From contig NW_002060997.1 of the NCBI RefSeq assembly GCF_000150275.1, positions 3,061-13,225 on the forward strand: 10,165 nucleotides of DNA, given 5' to 3'. The stretch's first letter is position 1. Each line of letters opens with the position of its first letter. The position numbers were made by a program, and so were the translations under genes. The notes under the pieces were generated by a model. That model made no database searches. It was not told where the DNA came from and saw only the letters and a program-made list of their open reading frames with translations. This document shows, in pieces, positions 1,381 through 10,165 of this stretch. The DNA comes from Trichoplax adhaerens. Lineage: Eukaryota > Animalia > Placozoa.

Positions 1381-1439
1381 GTCTGCTAGCAAAGGCGATC
1401 ATGACTGGAAGGGATATTGCCAACAGAAAATCGTCTTAC

Positions 1440-1517
1440 CTTGTTGTCCATGTTGTCTTCCACTTTTTCCCGACCCCAAAGGCGAGATTGCCTGCTTTCA
1501 TTCTCTTTCTCACCTTG
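1440..1517 (-). other. Candidate 78-nt orphan exon of unknown product
   Basis: On the minus strand, a branch-point-like CACTAAT lies ~25 nt upstream of a TAG acceptor (1520-1518) and a consensus donor AAG|GTAAGA begins at 1439. Phase 0 is open (QGEKENESRQSRLWGREKVEDNMDNK) and GC is locally raised. No recognisable domain. Confidence 0.3.
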
Positions 1518-1830
1518 CTATCCACAGTTTACAAAGTAAATTAGTGATTTCAATTAGAGCCAAGAAAAGTGAATGGCGAGCATGCAGTAAGCAGCGTGCC
1601 TGTGCGATACTTTCTTAGTCCAAGTGAGGTTACTCGGTTGATATCTTGCTTATAATATTGTCCGCTGTAGACTCCATTCCTACTTCTATAGAGTGACAAG
1701 CTATTTTGCACAGTAGCTTGCAGCGCCGACTCTCTACTTGGTCTTCCTCTTCTTCTACTGCCTTCTACACGTGAAATGGCAGTCAACCATCAAACATCTT
1801 TTTTTCTCACTTTCTTTTTCCATACTACAG

Positions 1831-2228
1831 ATTTCTCTCTCATACTTATTAATCTGTGCTTTTGACAGATATTGTTGGGTGTTAGCATTGTCATCTTGCT
1901 TAGCAGGTACGTCTTTCAACCAGTTAAAGCAATCTTAATTAATCGATGTCATTTTAAACGCAAACCCTAACATTATTGCAATAATATAATCGTCCCTTTA
2001 TCGCCATTAGACCTATAGTTGACATTTTGGGTTGTGAACTGAATTTCTCTTATACTTGTTAATCTGTGTGTTTTATAGATATTACTGGGTGTTATCCCTG
2101 GACAATATCCTGGATATAAATGCAAATACTTTACAATTGGAAATCTGCTCGTCTATAAAGTTGTCTACAATGACGATCAAAAAATGGCTACACAATCCAA
2201 AGAAGTGATGATTATATTTGGTTACTTG
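1831..2228 (+). other. Duplicated ~53-nt segment (1831-1884 / 2043-2094) overlapping two candidate orphan exons (1831 or 1869..1906; 2079..2228)
   Basis: A long pyrimidine tract ends in tacAG at 1830 and a donor CAG|GTACGT lies at 1907, giving ISLSYLLICAFDRYCWVLALSSCLA. In the second copy, ttttatAG (2078) to TTG|GTATGC (2229) brackets an open 150-nt stretch (ILLGVIPGQYPGYKCKYFTIGNLLVYKVVYNDDQKMATQSKEVMIIFGYL). The duplication is directly visible. Exon status and product are not established. Confidence 0.35.
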
Positions 2229-3614
2229 GTATGCCCTACCTAACACTATTGAGTGCGGTGTTGTTACTCAATAAAATGCTTTAATAAAGGATGATTTCAA
2301 TGGCAAATATTGACTACGCCTTTAACAGTATCATATTGACCATTTTGTTGGACATGATGATATGTCCTCTCTCTTCAAATTTAGTAGTTCTTGCTACTTG
2401 TATCGAGTAGAGTACAGTATATAAAGTTTTTGAACTGGATGATGAAGTAAAGTTAATGCTGTAGATTATGGGCCATTGGTCAACAGTCGTGCCTGCTGTA
2501 TCCTGAAATAACAAACTACGGTCAACAAAATAACCAATTGCCCAACTTTAACCACAACGAAGCCTTGAAGGCAAGCGAAGAAATGACATTTGCTCTGAAC
2601 CCGTACAAGCCTGGCACAGCCATTGCTGCATAGTTTCAATAGTATCTCATAGGACACTTGGGCTGAAAATGGCGCCTTGAAGAATCATGAATTTGGACAT
2701 ATCCAACAACATGCACATAGCAGAATATCATTTCACTACCATTATATTTGTACGCGCATATTGAGGGTTGAAAATCGATTACCTTTGAACTGGCTACGTT
2801 GTAGGGAACATTTTTGCCTAATGTAATAGGATTTTTAGTGGGTAGAAGTTTACTCGTATGCCATCTTCAATTCTATTTGGTTCTATTTGCTGACTTTGCT
2901 TATCGTTAGAATAAGCAGCATACAGTGCAATTGATAGAATTATACCTACATTTCGGCCCAAAATAACATCAAACTATCATTAGCCAGTCATGAAAAAATT
3001 AAATTGGTAAGTTTGACATTTGCTTGAATTTCTATCACATTATTCGTTACTTTTGAACTAGAAATAGAAATTGAAGGTTTCCAAAAGACGTGGACAAAAG
3101 CCATCTTACTGTACATGCTATCTTAAGAATCTTATTCAATTATTAATGTCATTAACATTAACTTCTCATAAATTGATGCAAAAGATTCTTCACTAGCGTT
3201 GTGTCTAAACTTATCATCTACAATTAGATTTCATTATTCAGTGACAGTCCAGCCTCGGTCTTTGCAACATGGATGGTTGCATTTTCAAGATCAATTTCTA
3301 TTTACATTTATATATGAGTTTGTAGGAGCATCTTGAATTATTGTCCAACCTTTTAAATAACCGAATTGTTTGTATTTCTGTGTTGGAATACGAATCGTAT
3401 GCATATAAATTTGTACCCGACATACGCCTACTATGCCATTAATTAAATAAGCATAATATCAATTCGCTGACAAGTACCATAATCGATTATTGCAACAAGA
3501 CTTTATTCGAATTGGCACTAACTTGTCGTTTTTGTCAAGGACGAATATCATTTATATATGTTGAAGTTATCAAATCAACTCAACATTTTTCATTGACCAA
3601 TAGTCAAGGAAAAG

Positions 3615-4430
3615 ATGGCCGATAATAAATCCATCCACTCTATAATTCCTCCTCATATACAATCATTGTATGAAAATGGTGAAAAGTATAAGACTACCTA
3701 CAATTGAACCCAAGGATTATCTTATTATACGCAAGCTCTAGATGAGATTCAAGTGTTTTGCAATCCTTGTGTCAAGATGGATCGACTTCGATGCGATATA
3801 TGTCTTGATATCTGCGATATTTATATTTTACAAAAAGAACAGCAAAAGAATGGAAAGAAAAGGGACATCTCTGCCTACTTAACTGCAAGATAAAGTGAGA
3901 ATGGCTGAATAGTTAGACAGACAAAGTAAGATTAAGGGATGGCAACGGGATTGGAAAGAAGCACTGGAAGACTGTTATAAATCGCTGAACTTGAAATTAA
4001 AATGCTTCCATAAAAATGATCCACGCCTTGCTGATAGTTATCCGCAGATTGGGCGCATCTACCGTCATCAGGGCAAGTCTACAAAAGCGCTTTCTAAGTA
4101 TGACAAATCCCTTAAAATTGGATTATTAGTTCTTGGTCACAATCATCCCGATGTTATATAACAATATTGGAGTTGTCTATGAGAAACGAGGCGAGTATAA
4201 TTTGGCTCTTTCTACATATAACAAGCCACTCAAGATTCGATCATTACTTCCTGGTCACAGTCATCCTGATGTTGGGCTCTTATATAACAACATTGGAGTA
4301 TCTATTCTAGACAAGGAAGGCACCATGAGGCTCTGCATATGTATAATAAGTCACTCAGTATTATTCTACCAGCCTTAGGCGTAAATCATCCCGAAGTTGG
4401 AAAAAAACGAAAAACAATATGGCCATTACT
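3615..4430 (+). pseudogene. Disrupted paralogue of the 8959 TPR gene (N-terminal region plus about 4 TPR units)
   Basis: ATG 3615 gives MADNKSIHSIIPPHIQSLYENGEKYKTTYN*TQGLSYYTQALDEIQ...RLRCDICLDICDIYILQ, which aligns by eye with MANQTSNSTIFDEIESIRKKGVKYHGEGNYEDALFYFQKAVTQIK. In-frame stops: TGA 3705 and TAG 3910. Frameshifts: near 3840-3885, ~4155 (8 nt shorter than the next unit), ~4300 (1 nt) and ~4410. Reconstructed TPRs: ...EALEDCYKSLNLKLKCFHKNDPRLADSYPQIGRIYRHQGKSTKALSKYDKSLKIGLLVLGHNHPDV/LYNNIGVVYEKRGEYNLALSTYNKPLKIRSLLPGHSHPDVGLLYNNIGV/YSRQGRHHEALHMYNKSLSIILPALGVNHPEVG. Track ORFs 4133 and 4339 are pieces of this. Confidence 0.9.
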
Positions 4431-4627
4431 CCCCGGGTGCAACGATCACAGTATAATCAGTCAACGTCAATGGCGAAAAGAGGGAAAGATAATCATGATG
4501 TTAATCAACACGTCCAAGATATAGCTTCGTCAATCGACAACAGCATTTTAATATACTAGTATTCAAGACTACCATAAATACAGTCCTATATCATAACAAC
4601 CATATTCTGTACTTTTTTATCCTACAG

Positions 4628-5120: not shown

Positions 5121-5427
5121 TTGGCACTTTCTATGCTAAATATTGCTCACAAAATTCGATTGCGCTTATTTGGTAATCTTCATCTTCTTATAGCGAATTC
5201 ACTTCAGATAATGGCTGTTTGTCGCTCATATCTTGGCCAGCATAAAGTGGCTTTTACGATGCTAAATAATGTATTATACATTCGATTAGCACACCTTTCT
5301 AAAAATCATGCCCATATTGCAGACACTTATGAGCATATGGGGGATGTTGGTAGCAATAATGGGGACTATCAACAGGCTATTTCTAAATATAACATGTCAC
5401 TAGATATGAGACATGCAATCTTAAAAT
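5121..5427 (+). pseudogene. Fragment of about 2.5 diverged 42-aa TPR units
   Basis: LALSMLNIAHKIRLRLFGNLHLL-IANSLQIMAVCRSYLGQHKVAFTMLNNVLYIRLAHLSKNHAH-IADTYEHMGDVGSNNGDYQQAISKYNMSLDMRHAILK. The spacing IANS to IADT is exactly 42 aa. It starts mid-repeat on TTG with an in-frame stop just upstream, so it is not a stand-alone gene. Confidence 0.8.
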
Positions 5428-5501
5428 TTGTCATTTTTATTCTATGTTATTCCAGGATTCGACTACAAAATCGGATTCTAACTAAATATAAATAATACTA
5501 T

Positions 5502-5929
5502 TGTCACAACGTTGTTTGTGGCACAAATAACTAATTTATTCCTAGTGTAACCGCTGTACCGTTAAATACCGTTGCTAATAAGTGTCACTAACTCGACTAG
5601 CTCAGTATAAGACCTTATTCAGCAGTGAGTATATCCAGACAACTTCGTAAGTCATCTTTATTCGAACGATAAAATATACTACTAGGTAATGTAATATGAG
5701 AACCCATTCTATGATTAAAGACACGCTCTTATATACCTTTGCCAATTTCCATCGGTGTAAATTAATACATAATTCTATTTACAATATACTTGATTTTGTA
5801 TAAAATATATTTATGATAATTATTATAGAATAAATAGGTGTTCATTAATATTGTGTACTTACCACTCTTACTCCTATTAACAAATCAACTAGACTTGTTA
5901 CTTAACAATTCACAGTAACAAGTGTGACA
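5502..5929. mobile_element. Possible solo-LTR-like or short-TIR non-autonomous element (428 bp)
   Basis: Bounded by inverted termini TGTCACA (5502-5508) and TGTGACA (5923-5929), i.e. TG...CA. Contains TATATA (~5730) and AATAAA (5829). No 4-6 bp target-site duplication (ACTAT vs ATCTC; only AT on each side), which weakens the call. Confidence 0.25.
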
Positions 5930-8900
5930 ATCTCTATTACACATTCTACTCTTATTAGATGATTTAAATCATCAGAGTCGCTAATAGAAATCCATTAACG
6001 ATTTAACATATCGTCACTCTACTTTAGATAAAAATATGAATAAATATTTTTTTATGTACGGTAATGATGAACCGTAACAACCATCAACAATAAAACTTTT
6101 TCTGAGAAAGAAATAATTAATAGAATATCGGATTATAATTGTAATCTATAATAGCAAGAAAGATTACTATTTTCGTTGTGCGACATTCTAAAGTAAAATT
6201 GAAAGCACATTTCACGTATCGATACTTTAACTAGGTAAAGTAAGATGCTATTTCTATTATCTATCGAATAATAAAATTGCAAGAATTCAAACTTCCAACA
6301 AAAACTATTCATGATTTATTTTGCTTTTTTTCAAACACATTATTTCATTAATTAAAAATAGAGGACCTCATGCTGTAAATACGCTGAAAAATATTATGAC
6401 AGTTTATGTATGATATTGCCTTTGTAAAATGTAAATGTTACAGATTTTCTTATACATACACCTGTACTAAGAGAAGTGGATAGAAGAAAAGCACATTACA
6501 ATAGGCAAATTATTGGCGATAGCTAATTCAAATCTGATTATTGACGACAATCGCATACACTTTTTGGCCAAGATTATGCTTATTTGCTGTTTGAATTAAT
6601 CTATATAATCTGCCAATATCTACTCAATTTTGGTTAAAAGAGAACAAAGAAAAATTAGAAGCACATACGTTCAAAGTTACCAAACCTTGCTATTTCCCTC
6701 CTTCCACCAAAACCTCCACATAGTTTCAGGTCTTTGCAGCTTCTTAAGCAAGCAGAATTTACATATAAATTTCGCATTACTGGTAAAATACTGTAGTGAT
6801 ATAAACTATTAATGAATTATTAAGAATCACATTCAATATACCGTACTCAATTTCGATTGAAATATACGGTAATTAATATTACCAACAGCAATGACTTTTC
6901 CTGCAAGATCGTTCATTTATTATTATGCTGGATAGATGATTAAAAAATAATGATTTTCTACAATACCAGTAAAAGAATTTTTGAAAGAATTTATTAAAGT
7001 TCTGATATAGCATCTTGCAGCTACTATAACAAACAGCACGATTTCTTACTAATTTTATAATGTCAACTGTATCAGCCTAGCAATAACAATTTCAACTTAA
7101 TCCTACGTAAATTTCGGGGCTGCTCTATGTAAGTGTAATTGCATTACTAATCCCCATTTTAAAAGACCGTTACTTCTATTTAACTGATAGTACCGTTGTA
7201 AGCCATCATTTTGATGTTCTCTAGCCTAAAATACTAATTTTCCATGATTAGTTTTACTTCTTCGCAATAATACAGTTAATATAAATGATAAATACACTTG
7301 CAATTCCATGAATATGTGATTACGATATTATGATAAATCCTAACCAGAGTCAAGTCATTGGGCTCATGCTATATTTACGCTATATACTATATGCATGCTA
7401 TCTATGTATAGCATATACATATACTTTGATAATTCAATTTTGCCCTTCCCATACGATTATGGAAAATAAGTTTCCATTTGAAGACACTAGCAGCTATGCA
7501 ATTAGTGTTAGCTTTATGTAAGTGTTTCTTTAAGCAAGTATAATGAAGGAAGTCGGTGGTAGGCAATGTACGATATAGTAGATTAATGTTGAAGTATATC
7601 GACAGTTTATACTCGTCGCTATTTATCATTAGCTTCAATGAATATGTTCTTATTGCTTACTGCTGATTGTTATTGCTTAATAAAAATACGCAACTTAAAA
7701 TACCGATAATTATATTGCAAAACCACATCATTAATATTACATAACGTGAAGTATTTCTTTATTACCCTTTTCCAATAGCCTATAATCTGCGATTGCAGTT
7801 CTAATTTGCAAATTTTCAATTATGCTTTGTAGTCATGAAATAATATTAATTAACTTACGGTTACAGTAGTAGATTACCCTAAAAAAGATAAAAGCTATTT
7901 TAATTAGGTGCTAATTGAATATTATTAATTAATCAAGCTAGCAAGTCAGTCATTGAATGTATACTCGTATAATGATAGATTTTAATCGCATCGTTTTCAT
8001 TATACATATTTAATTTCAGTTACTGATGTTTTCGACATCAATGTGATAACTATGATATTTGAAAATAGGATTGAAAGTTTACGGATTTTAAATGAAATGG
8101 TGAATCTACCCTACGGCTTTAACTTGTATGATTTGTGCTATTTGGATTTTGTATGGTGAATTGAGTACGAATCACTTAAATCGTAAATTGAAATAATACA
8201 GACCACCTCTTATATGCATGGCATTATATAAGATTAAAAATAAACCTGCAATAAAATAGTCTATCTTAGTATCTTATATAAAATTGACACATTTAATAGA
8301 ATACTAGTTTATCCTCGTGTAAGTACCGTAAGTGTCATGTGCTATGCAGGTGATTTATACATTAGCTTTAGTTGAATTAGACATCAAGCAATTTTGTATT
8401 CATCAATCAATTTAATGATGCAAAATTATTATCCAATCAATGTTAATTCAATCTTTATTGGTAAGCGTGGAAGCTATTGTCATGTTCCTATTCTATTCAT
8501 GTTCATGCTAATCTTGAACTTATTGTACGTGTAGGCTCAACATTTGAGTCATTTTGATGCTAGTGTTGTGCTAATGATGCGTTTTTTAATTATTATTATA
8601 ATGATGATTGACATATTAGAAAAACGGATAGAAAGAAGTGTTGACAAGAATGCCTGCCCAATTTAATTTATTTCTTCTCCATCATCCTGATGAATTGTAA
8701 GAGAATAATGGATGAATGATTGAAAACCGCGAACAAATAAAGGCGTATCCGATTTGGCTAATTAGAGCACGCTCCTAACAGAAATAGACTTTGTAATGCT
8801 GATCTTGGTTTTAAAAAATCGAGCATCCATGATAGTGTGCTCTTTACGTATTTTATCACTCATTTGTACAGCGATCAAAACTGTTAACCCGATCGAGTAG

Positions 8901-8958
8901 ACAAATTGTGACTATTTTTCTCAAATTGTATATTTTGATTGTTGTTGAAAAGTAAAAT

Positions 8959-10165
8959 ATGGCCAATCAGACTAGCAATTCTACGATATTTGACGAGATT
9001 GAATCTATACGCAAAAAGGGCGTGAAATATCATGGCGAAGGCAATTATGAAGACGCGTTATTTTATTTTCAGAAAGCTGTAACTCAAATCAAATCGATAG
9101 CGGAGAGTAGCGATAGTCGTCGTCAACTTGAATATTCTATTTATCTCGCTATGGCTCAATCTTACCTGCAAAAATATCAATTGATAGAAGCCAATGAATA
9201 CAGTGGAAAAGCAGAAAAGTTAGCTGAGAAACTAGAAGAGGTCAAGATTTCTTATTGTTTCGATATCCAGGGCGACTGTAAACGACTTCAAAGTGATTTT
9301 ATGGGTGCTTTGAGTGATTACAACAAATCACTTCAAATAAAATTAAAATCGTTAGGGAGTGAACATCTTGATGTCTGTAAGTCCTATCATAACGTTGGCT
9401 TGGTCTACCAGAATCAAGGCAAGCATGACGAGGCTTTAAAGGAATACAATAAATCATTAAAGATTAAACTGACACAACTTGGTGATAATCATCCAAGTAT
9501 TGCTGATACATATAGCAATATTGGTCTTGTCTATGATCGTCAAGGCAAGTATGATGACGCTCTATCAATGTATAACAAGTCACTCAAGATTCGACAAACA
9601 CAACTTGGCGACAATCATCCAAGTATTGCTACAACATATAACAACATTGGTCTTGTCTATCATCATCAAGGCAAGTATGATGACGCTCTATCAATGTATA
9701 ACAAGTCACTCAAGATTCGACAAACACAACTTGGCGACAATCATCCAAGTATTGCTACAACATATCACAACATTGCAAGTGTCTATGATAATCAAGGCAA
9801 GTATGATGACGCTCTATCAATGTATAACAAGTCACTCAAGATTAATCAAACACAACTTGGCGACAATCATCCAAGTATTGCTACAACATATCACAACATT
9901 GCAAGTGTCTATGATAATCAAGGCAAGTATGATGACGCTCTATCAATGTATAACAAGTCACTCAAGATTAAACTGACACAACTTGGCGACAATCATCCAA
10001 GTATTGCTGATACATATAACAACATTGCAAATGTCTATCATCGTCAAGGCAAGTATGATGACGCTCTATCAATGTATAACAAGTCACTCAAGATTCGACA
10101 AACACAACTTGGCGACAATCATCCAAGTATTGCTACAACATATCACAACATTGCAAGTGTCTATG
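8959..10165 (+). CDS. 42-aa TPR repeat protein (kinesin light chain / nephrocystin-3-like TPR class), 5' part, truncated by the window end
   Basis: Frame +1 is open from ATG 8959 to the window end (402 codons, no stop, so absent from the ORF track). Manual translation: MANQTSNSTIFDEIESIRKKGVKYHGEGNYEDALFYFQKAVTQIKSIAESSDSRRQLEYSIYLAMAQSYLQKYQLIEANEYSGKAEKLAEKLEEVKISYCFDIQGDCKRLQSDFMGALSDYNKSLQIKLKSLGSEHLDVCKSYHNVGLVYQNQGKHDEALKEYNKSLKIKLTQLGDNHPSIADTYSNIGLVYDRQGKYDDALSMYNKSLKIRQTQLGDNHPSIATTYNNIGLVYHHQGK... The TPR consensus Y4-I7-G/A8-Y11-G15-Y17-A20-Y24-S27-L28 recurs every 42 aa. Confidence 0.95.
   Translation, partial: MANQTSNSTIFDEIESIRKKGVKYHGEGNYEDALFYFQKAVTQIKSIAESSDSRRQLEYSIYLAMAQSYLQKYQLIEANEYSGKAEKLAEKLEEVKISYCFDIQGDCKRLQSDFMGALSDYNKSLQIKLKSLGSEHLDVCKSYHNVGLVYQNQGKHDEALKEYNKSLKIKLTQLGDNHPSIADTYSNIGLVYDRQGKYDDALSMYNKSLKIRQTQLGDNHPSIATTYNNIGLVYHHQGKYDDALSMYNKSLKIRQTQLGDNHPSIATTYHNIASVYDNQGKYDDALSMYNKSLKINQTQLGDNHPSIATTYHNIASVYDNQGKYDDALSMYNKSLKIKLTQLGDNHPSIADTYNNIANVYHRQGKYDDALSMYNKSLKIRQTQLGDNHPSIATTYHNIASVY
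9250..10165 (+). repeat. Coding tandem repeat, 126-bp unit; 2 diverged leading units (9250, 9376) then near-identical units (9502, 9628, 9754, 9880, 10006, 10132 partial)
   Basis: CAAGGCAAG recurs at 9415, 9541, 9667, 9793, 9919 and 10045, an exact 126-nt period. A 51-nt block (CAAGGC...CTCAAGATT) and a 33-nt block (ACACAACTTGGC...ATTGCT) are identical in five consecutive units. Confidence 0.98.

Follow-up and report, generated by a model that had tools for sequence, protein, structure and literature searches.

Repeats of high internal conservation (HIC) in fungal NLRs are reportedly the subject of work by Paoletti in 2007. The WD40, ANK and TPR repeats of these proteins form a 'high internal conservation' regime (PMC4986451, PMC11761791, PMC13449251), exemplified by the WD40 repeats of HET-D/E/R and by the ANK and TPR repeats of NB-ARC/NACHT proteins in Podospora (Dyrka 2014, PMC4986451; Ament-Velasquez 2025/2026, PMC11761791, PMC13449251). 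In such genes the repeats are 80-100% identical to one another, a few hypervariable codons of the binding surface are under diversifying selection, the number of repeats varies, and recombination shuffles repeats within and between paralogues, mostly, according to the fungal papers, by exchange of whole repeats. The fungal proteins typically also carry an NLR nucleotide-binding domain. In TPRs generally, positions 2, 5, 9, 12 and 13 are the most variable, lie on the concave face and contact the ligand (PMC1261162). Kinesin light chain and NPHP3, which have 6-11 diverged TPRs and a fixed ligand, bind peptides by the concave face of helix A. In lamprey VLRs and diversity-generating retroelements, a few positions of the binding surface of a repeat protein are varied among limited alternatives. 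For Trichoplax adhaerens, 17 or more ROCO genes have been reported, carrying TPR, CARD and Death domains (Civiero 2014, PMC4104024), and a literature search found no account of an HIC-type regime in Trichoplax TPR genes. In this study, we analyse a stretch of 10,165 nucleotides of T. adhaerens DNA, referred to as the window, which ends in an array of near-identical TPR units, and compare these units with those of related loci. The first-pass annotation had described all four combinations of alleles at pairs of codons only 12-30 nt apart, and had proposed exchange within short spacers, drawing on a small allele pool, as part of a possibly dedicated, germline or even somatic, process.

Methods

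The window corresponds to positions 3061-13225 of scaffold C1360, in an assembly of 105.6 Mb and 1414 contigs. The unit set consisted of 290 in-register units from the window and 20 other loci (given as L numbers), with about 170 kb of the genome sampled. Within it, a closest group (group A; 110 units from 14 loci) and a more diverged group (group B) were distinguished. Tandem repeats were located using TRF, and domains were identified by Pfam. Recombination was assessed by the Hudson-Kaplan minimum, by linkage between codons and by a PHI-like permutation test, and pN/pS was obtained by Nei-Gojobori counting.

Results

The TPR gene of the window

A reading frame beginning with the ATG at 8959 was open on the plus strand to the end of the window, and TRF reported a single array at 9472-10165 with a period of 126 bp, 5.5 copies, 92% matches and no indels (Table 1). 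The encoded protein matched the Pfam families TPR_12 (5.8e-94; 308.8 bits against a cut-off of 30.1) and TPR_10 (1.4e-66). The closest solved structures, by sequence match, were TPR chains of KLC1/2 (E 4.7e-47 to 1e-39), and the 42-residue TPR structure from Podospora, 4y6c, was matched at 4e-17. Unit position 1 coincides with the start of the TPR_1 profile, and the numbering of the first-pass annotation, which is kept here, is therefore the canonical TPR numbering. Residues Y4, I7, G/A8, Y11, A20, Y24 and S27 were nearly invariant among 288 units and fit the TPR signature positions. The 3' stretch of the window is thus probably the 5' part of an intronless placozoan gene whose product contains an array of 42-residue TPR repeats of the kinesin-light-chain type.

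Table 1. Features of the window gene, and Death and Roc-COR reading frames near paralogous arrays
Feature	Position	Strand	Basis; residues at codons 2, 5, 8, 9, 12, 13 / 31, 32
Gene start: ATG and about 139 residues of a degenerate TPR-like N-terminal module	8959..9375	+	Open frame
First TPR unit, divergent edge unit	9376..9501	+	90/126 identity to reference unit
Near-identical unit 1	9502..9627	+	D S G L D R / R Q
Near-identical unit 2	9628..9753	+	T N G L H H / R Q
Near-identical unit 3	9754..9879	+	T H A S D N / N Q
Near-identical unit 4	9880..10005	+	T H A S D N / K L
Near-identical unit 5	10006..10131	+	D N A N H R / R Q
Partial unit 6, T H A S ...	10132..10165	+	Cut by N run after window
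Death / Roc-COR ORFs	L019:2-1657, L019:2166-2555, L028:2083-2349, L017:1120-1433	-	Domain matches

At the DNA level, the N-terminal module was 95-100% identical to that of nine paralogues. The edge unit that follows it, recognised by 'KHDEALKEY', was the opening unit of 10 arrays, its position being conserved among paralogues. The window units matched the reference unit at 115-126 of 126 positions. Only 18 of the 126 columns varied among them, all in codons 2, 5, 6, 8, 9, 12, 13, 31 and 32, and units 3 and 4 had an identical helix A, their sole differences lying in codons 31-32.

Upstream of the gene, decayed TPR units of a different, 'HPDV' subtype were spread over several frames of the plus strand at 3991-4524 and 5121-5495, together with an ORF of 124 aa matching TPR_12. 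A Pfam scan of these pieces gave TPR matches only, without a Roc domain, and they resemble what is left of a further member of the family.

Relatives with Death and Roc-COR domains

From residue 1, the N-terminus encoded in the window was colinear with the 'Nephrocystin-3' protein P0044 of Trichoplax sp. H2 (RDD40155.1), with 57% identity over 403 aa. In RDD40155.1 the TPR array is followed by Death, Roc, COR and Death domains. ORFs with Death domains were located 2.4-4.5 kb downstream of three paralogous arrays of T. adhaerens on the same strand as the arrays, whose own ORFs end in a stop, and the Roc-COR ORF of L019, about 3.9 kb past the stop codon of the array, was 95% identical to RDD40155.1. 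These downstream ORFs may be spliced partners of the arrays or neighbouring genes. Judged by its sequence, the window gene is a member of a placozoan TPR/Death/Roc-COR family, with its own 3' end cut by a gap. Neither a NACHT nor an NB-ARC domain was found in the complete paralogues, which are TPR-only ORFs, or in neighbouring ORFs. At L018, two identical ORFs of 356 residues, L018:3388-4455 and L018:390-1457, both on the minus strand, were present downstream of the TPR array; neither had a Pfam match at E <= 0.01.

Hypervariable codons and selection

Stop codons were absent from 288 of the 290 units. Amino-acid entropy was 2.2-3.05 bits at positions 2, 5, 9, 12, 13 and 31, and below 1.2 bits at all others. 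By register, hypervariable positions 2, 5, 9, 12 and 13 match the published variable TPR positions and are predicted to line the concave ligand-binding groove. The pN/pS ratio was 1.8 at the hypervariable codons and 0.24-0.32 elsewhere, an estimate that is crude in that recombination violates tree-based selection tests; on this crude measure, the hypervariable codons are under diversifying selection. Scaffold codons hardly differed, either between units or between the paralogues of very recent origin, of which there are at least 10. Minor synonymous codons made up 2% at hypervariable codons and 3-7% elsewhere. The G/A switch at codon 8 went together with codon 9.

Reassortment of groove codons within units

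In the units starting at 9502 to 10132, taken in order, codon 2 was GAT, ACA, ACA, ACA, GAT and ACA, and codon 8 was GGT, GGT, GCA, GCA, GCA and GCA; codon 12, in the units from 9502 to 10006, was GAT, CAT, GAT, GAT and CAT. The alleles of units 9502, 9628, 9754/9880 and 10006 confirmed the four combinations noted in the first-pass annotation at codons 2 and 8, 8 and 12, and 2 and 12. The Hudson-Kaplan minimum was three recombination events within nt 4-38, assuming that no site mutated twice. It had further been argued that multi-base alleles make recurrent mutation unlikely. This was found to be so for codons 2 and 8/9, whose alleles differ by 3-4 bases, but not for codon 12, where GAT and CAT are one base apart; both incompatibilities that involve codon 12 could therefore be due to recurrent mutation. 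Within the window itself, the hard evidence is the conflict of codon 2 with codons 8-9 only. The helix-A haplotypes of the window were not found in any other unit of the sampled set.

The same conflict was present across the family. GAT and ACA at codon 2, which are three bases apart, and the dicodons GGT-CTT and GCA-AGT at codons 8-9, which are four bases apart, occurred in all four combinations, in 7, 8, 5 and 15 units (group A; 110 units, 14 loci). As had been claimed, whole-unit duplication is excluded as the explanation by these quartets, in which multi-base alleles reassort inside single units, and dozens of further multi-base quartets, some of them with silent markers, also showed four combinations. 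The silent third base of codon 8 was almost perfectly tied to the codon-9 allele: Gly-8 was GGA when codon 9 was CAA or AAT, and GGT when it was CGT, CTT or (once) TGT, and Ala-8 was GCA with AGT, AAT, ACT or ATT. The codon 8/9 pairs are therefore inherited cassettes and not repeated inventions.

Codons 3-18 nt apart were strongly linked (z = 5-10). Linkage had weakened at 30 nt, and beyond about 50 nt none remained, helix A and codons 31-32 (54-87 nt apart) being unlinked. The PHI test had been proposed as a check on recombination, and its PHI-like counterpart gave support in group A, where incompatibility rose with distance (p < 0.001), but not in group B (p = 0.06-0.23, not significant). 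At the codon level, the trend of incompatibility with distance had p = 0.018 and 0.009. Linkage between neighbouring units was weak and patchy, and is of no help in separating single junctions from short conversion tracts. Residual linkage within helix A could reflect structural co-adaptation instead of physical linkage. At codons 5, 12 and 13, the alleles were one-step neighbours (NAC and NAT series) separated by single first- or second-base changes, and the adjacent codons 31 and 32 also showed four gametes, with CTA and CAA one base apart.

These data support recombinational reassortment of a limited pool of alleles among units, which rests on the hard quartets, the codon 8/9 tie and the distance-dependent incompatibility. 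Other parts of the first-pass annotation fared less well. The pool is not as small as had been supposed, there being 6-12 alleles per site and 98 distinct units among the 110. Nor were the 6-nt spacers singled out as sites of exchange, as linkage decays smoothly and mosaic repair of a longer heteroduplex fits equally well. A dedicated or somatic process found no backing: no donor cassettes, no hot spot and no silent excess at variable codons were seen.

Turnover of the arrays

In ten paralogues, 5' flanks and N-terminal regions were 95-100% identical. Among paralogues with near-identical flanks, none of 139 interior units at the same index had a helix A in common, and at any index only 3 of 278 interior units were common to paralogues. 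Turnover is therefore much quicker in the interior of the arrays than in the flanks. Positions at the ends are conserved: the first, second and last units stay in place across paralogues, an edge protection that is expected under unequal exchange.

The paralogous arrays contained 3-30 units at a spacing of exactly 126 bp except at two junctions (120 bp in L030, 127 and 132 bp in L033). Complete paralogues were single ORFs of 873-1489 residues, each beginning with the N-terminal module, continuing with 7-30 units and a small number of divergent terminal units, and ending in a charged tail before the stop codon. In the closest paralogues (L017:5953-6500 and L019:5562-6116, both on the minus strand), the C-terminal tail was of low complexity and rich in E, K and Q ('EKQEKQEE' type).

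Two arrays had a perfect higher-order structure. In L022 (C1333, minus strand), a block of six units (756 bp) was repeated within the units at 1387-3150 with no differences over 1008 bp, and in L025 (C962) the units at 1633-3648 had a 13-unit period, also with no differences. Both repeats reflect either very recent unequal exchange or assembly stutter. Eight consecutive units were 99.6% identical between L029:6685-7944, on a megabase scaffold, and L032:1836-3095, on a 4-kb scaffold. At the end of this block, identity decayed over about one unit, the helix-A codons differing first; here the edge of a duplicated or allelic block can be seen within an array. The window also has a segmental duplicate of 4 kb, in which positions 5422-9389 were 98.2% identical to L021:1056-5034 (C1414, near 13.23 Mb). 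This duplicate covers the upstream region of the window and the gene start, and the array there has in-frame stop codons; the duplicate is therefore a pseudogene copy.

Discussion

We consider ordinary homologous recombination between misaligned near-identical units, combined with diversifying selection, to be the likely explanation of the pattern. Recombination between misaligned units would be frequent because neighbouring units have long identical stretches in common. It would include gene conversion as well as unequal exchange between sister chromatids or between alleles, operating inside single arrays and probably also from one paralogue to another. Every event would leave, within some unit, either a junction or a patchily repaired heteroduplex. 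Over repeated events, multi-base alleles already present would reassort at groove codons 12-30 nt apart, and new groove combinations would be kept by selection. Recurrent mutation under selection may also contribute, with one-base changes adding to the pattern at codons 5, 12 and 13. General recombination with patchy mismatch repair is the molecular route that we infer from the sequences, and the role of the array as a receptor is inferred likewise.

It is unlikely that recurrent point mutation under diversifying selection acted without any exchange, the same groove alleles arising again and mimicking recombination. Such mutation would suit the one-step alleles of codons 5, 12 and 13, fits the four gametes at the adjacent codons 31/32 better than exchange does, and agrees with the non-significant result in group B; the use of one codon per amino acid is likewise expected from one-step change of a shared ancestral codon. 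As the sole cause, however, it is largely refuted by the three- and four-base alleles found in four combinations, in 5-15 units each, and the tie of the silent base of codon 8 to the codon-9 allele, the increase of incompatibility with distance and the level of silent change, which is not raised at hypervariable codons (2% against 3-7%), also argue against it. Very unlikely, in our view, is an assembly artefact, in which reads from several paralogous arrays of near-identical sequence were combined and haplotypes became chimeric through a column-wise consensus. The setting is one in which this could occur, as short-read assemblies fail on HIC-type repeats (PMC11761791), at least 10 paralogues have flanks that are 95-100% identical, many arrays are on small, gap-rich scaffolds, and the two perfect higher-order repeats could be assembly stutter. 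The window itself lies between two N runs of the 38.7-kb scaffold C1360 (1644-3060, and 13226 to at least 30000, more than 26 kb being N), the second of which cuts the array. No independent assembly confirming the window haplotypes was found: an exact-product look-up for the window protein gave no match, and two word-index protein searches gave no near-identical protein from another assembly, the best matches from Trichoplax sp. H2 being 41-57% identical. Against merging of reads stand the near-complete absence of stop codons from the units, the 126-bp spacing that is exact apart from L030 and L033, and the recurrence of the same allele combinations in many loci, including arrays within megabase scaffolds. 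Random consensus chimeras would, moreover, blur the linkage of neighbouring codons and the near-perfect codon 8/9 pairing, and both are kept.

Least probable of the readings is a dedicated, possibly somatic, process that assembles helix A from allele cassettes in the manner of lamprey VLRs or by a targeted mutator. Shuffling that is nearly saturated beyond about 30-50 nt, and interior units of paralogues that share nothing by position despite almost identical flanks, are what such a process might leave. Trichoplax reproduces mainly by fission and, given this, mitotic events would be inherited. Every array examined was, however, a complete in-frame gene and not an incomplete gene with flanking donor cassettes, and the decay of linkage was smooth, with spacers that contain no hot spot; spacers as recombination hot spots were accordingly rejected as a candidate. 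Targeted hypermutation was rejected, since minor synonymous codons are no more frequent at hypervariable codons than elsewhere and a mutator would leave a silent excess there. The NNC/NNT appearance of codons 5, 9, 12 and 13 had prompted consideration of adenine mutagenesis of the kind seen with diversity-generating retroelements, and this was set aside as well: codon 2 does not fit, template logic is lacking, and the variation is codon-specific and not adenine-specific, many adenines being invariant. The fungal analogue is explained by general recombination, somatic change there was too rare to detect (PMC11761791), and a similar somatic claim for brown-algal TPR/LRR receptors has not been borne out (PMC11378527). 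Nothing in these data points to dedicated or somatic machinery for diversification. That frequent or promoted mitotic exchange in the TPR arrays makes individuals or clonal lineages mosaic for receptor variants is a long shot, hardly more probable than such a machine; if true, this mosaicism would be a repeat-shuffling generator of diversity for Death/Roc-COR-linked receptors in one of the simplest animals.

Recombination between misaligned units with selection on the groove brings the locus close to the fungal HIC repeats. The window array has 92% matches in TRF, above the level of about 80-85% identity that marks HIC repeats within a gene, its few hypervariable codons are under diversifying selection and are placed on a binding surface by register, unit number varies from 3 to 30 among paralogues of one assembly, and the TPR type is the same kinesin-light-chain-like unit of 42 residues, as the match to 4y6c indicates. 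The locus differs from the fungal cases in that its host is an animal, a placozoan, that its relatives carry Death and Roc-COR domains and not the NLR nucleotide-binding domain, and that mixing takes place inside single units, on a scale of 12-30 nt, rather than mostly by whole-repeat exchange. The likeness to the placozoan ROCO or 'Nephrocystin-3' type (TPR-Death-Roc-COR-Death) lies in the N-terminal module and TPR array, which are colinear with RDD40155.1; in contrast, the window gene is cut by a gap, its complete paralogues stop after the charged tail, and repeats are much less uniform in the H2 proteins that were retrieved. With kinesin light chain, NPHP3 and consensus-designed TPRs the array has fold residues 4, 7, 8, 11, 20, 24 and 27 in common, and a counterpart of their peptide-binding helix-A face is predicted by register, but its repeats are near-clonal, number up to 30 and form a variable groove, where those proteins have 6-11 diverged repeats and a fixed ligand. 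Lamprey VLRs and diversity-generating retroelements resemble the locus in outcome only; an incomplete germline gene, a field of donor cassettes, an adenine-specific pattern and an associated enzyme are absent here.

The reassortment of groove codons is therefore genuine, though in receptor repeats of high internal conservation it is largely to be expected. As the arrays adjoin assembly gaps, long reads are needed before claims at the level of haplotypes are trusted, and the locus offers a concrete case in which the rate of change of such arrays can be followed in an animal that propagates clonally. The TPR array genes are plausible candidates for non-self or symbiont recognition in placozoans, and mixing below the level of the unit multiplies the binding surfaces that can be obtained from a small pool of alleles. 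The combination of a homogenised scaffold with a hypervariable groove, long studied in immune-type receptors of fungi, operates in an early-branching animal too, in a gene family that is tied to Death and Roc-COR signalling domains and not to NLR ATPases.
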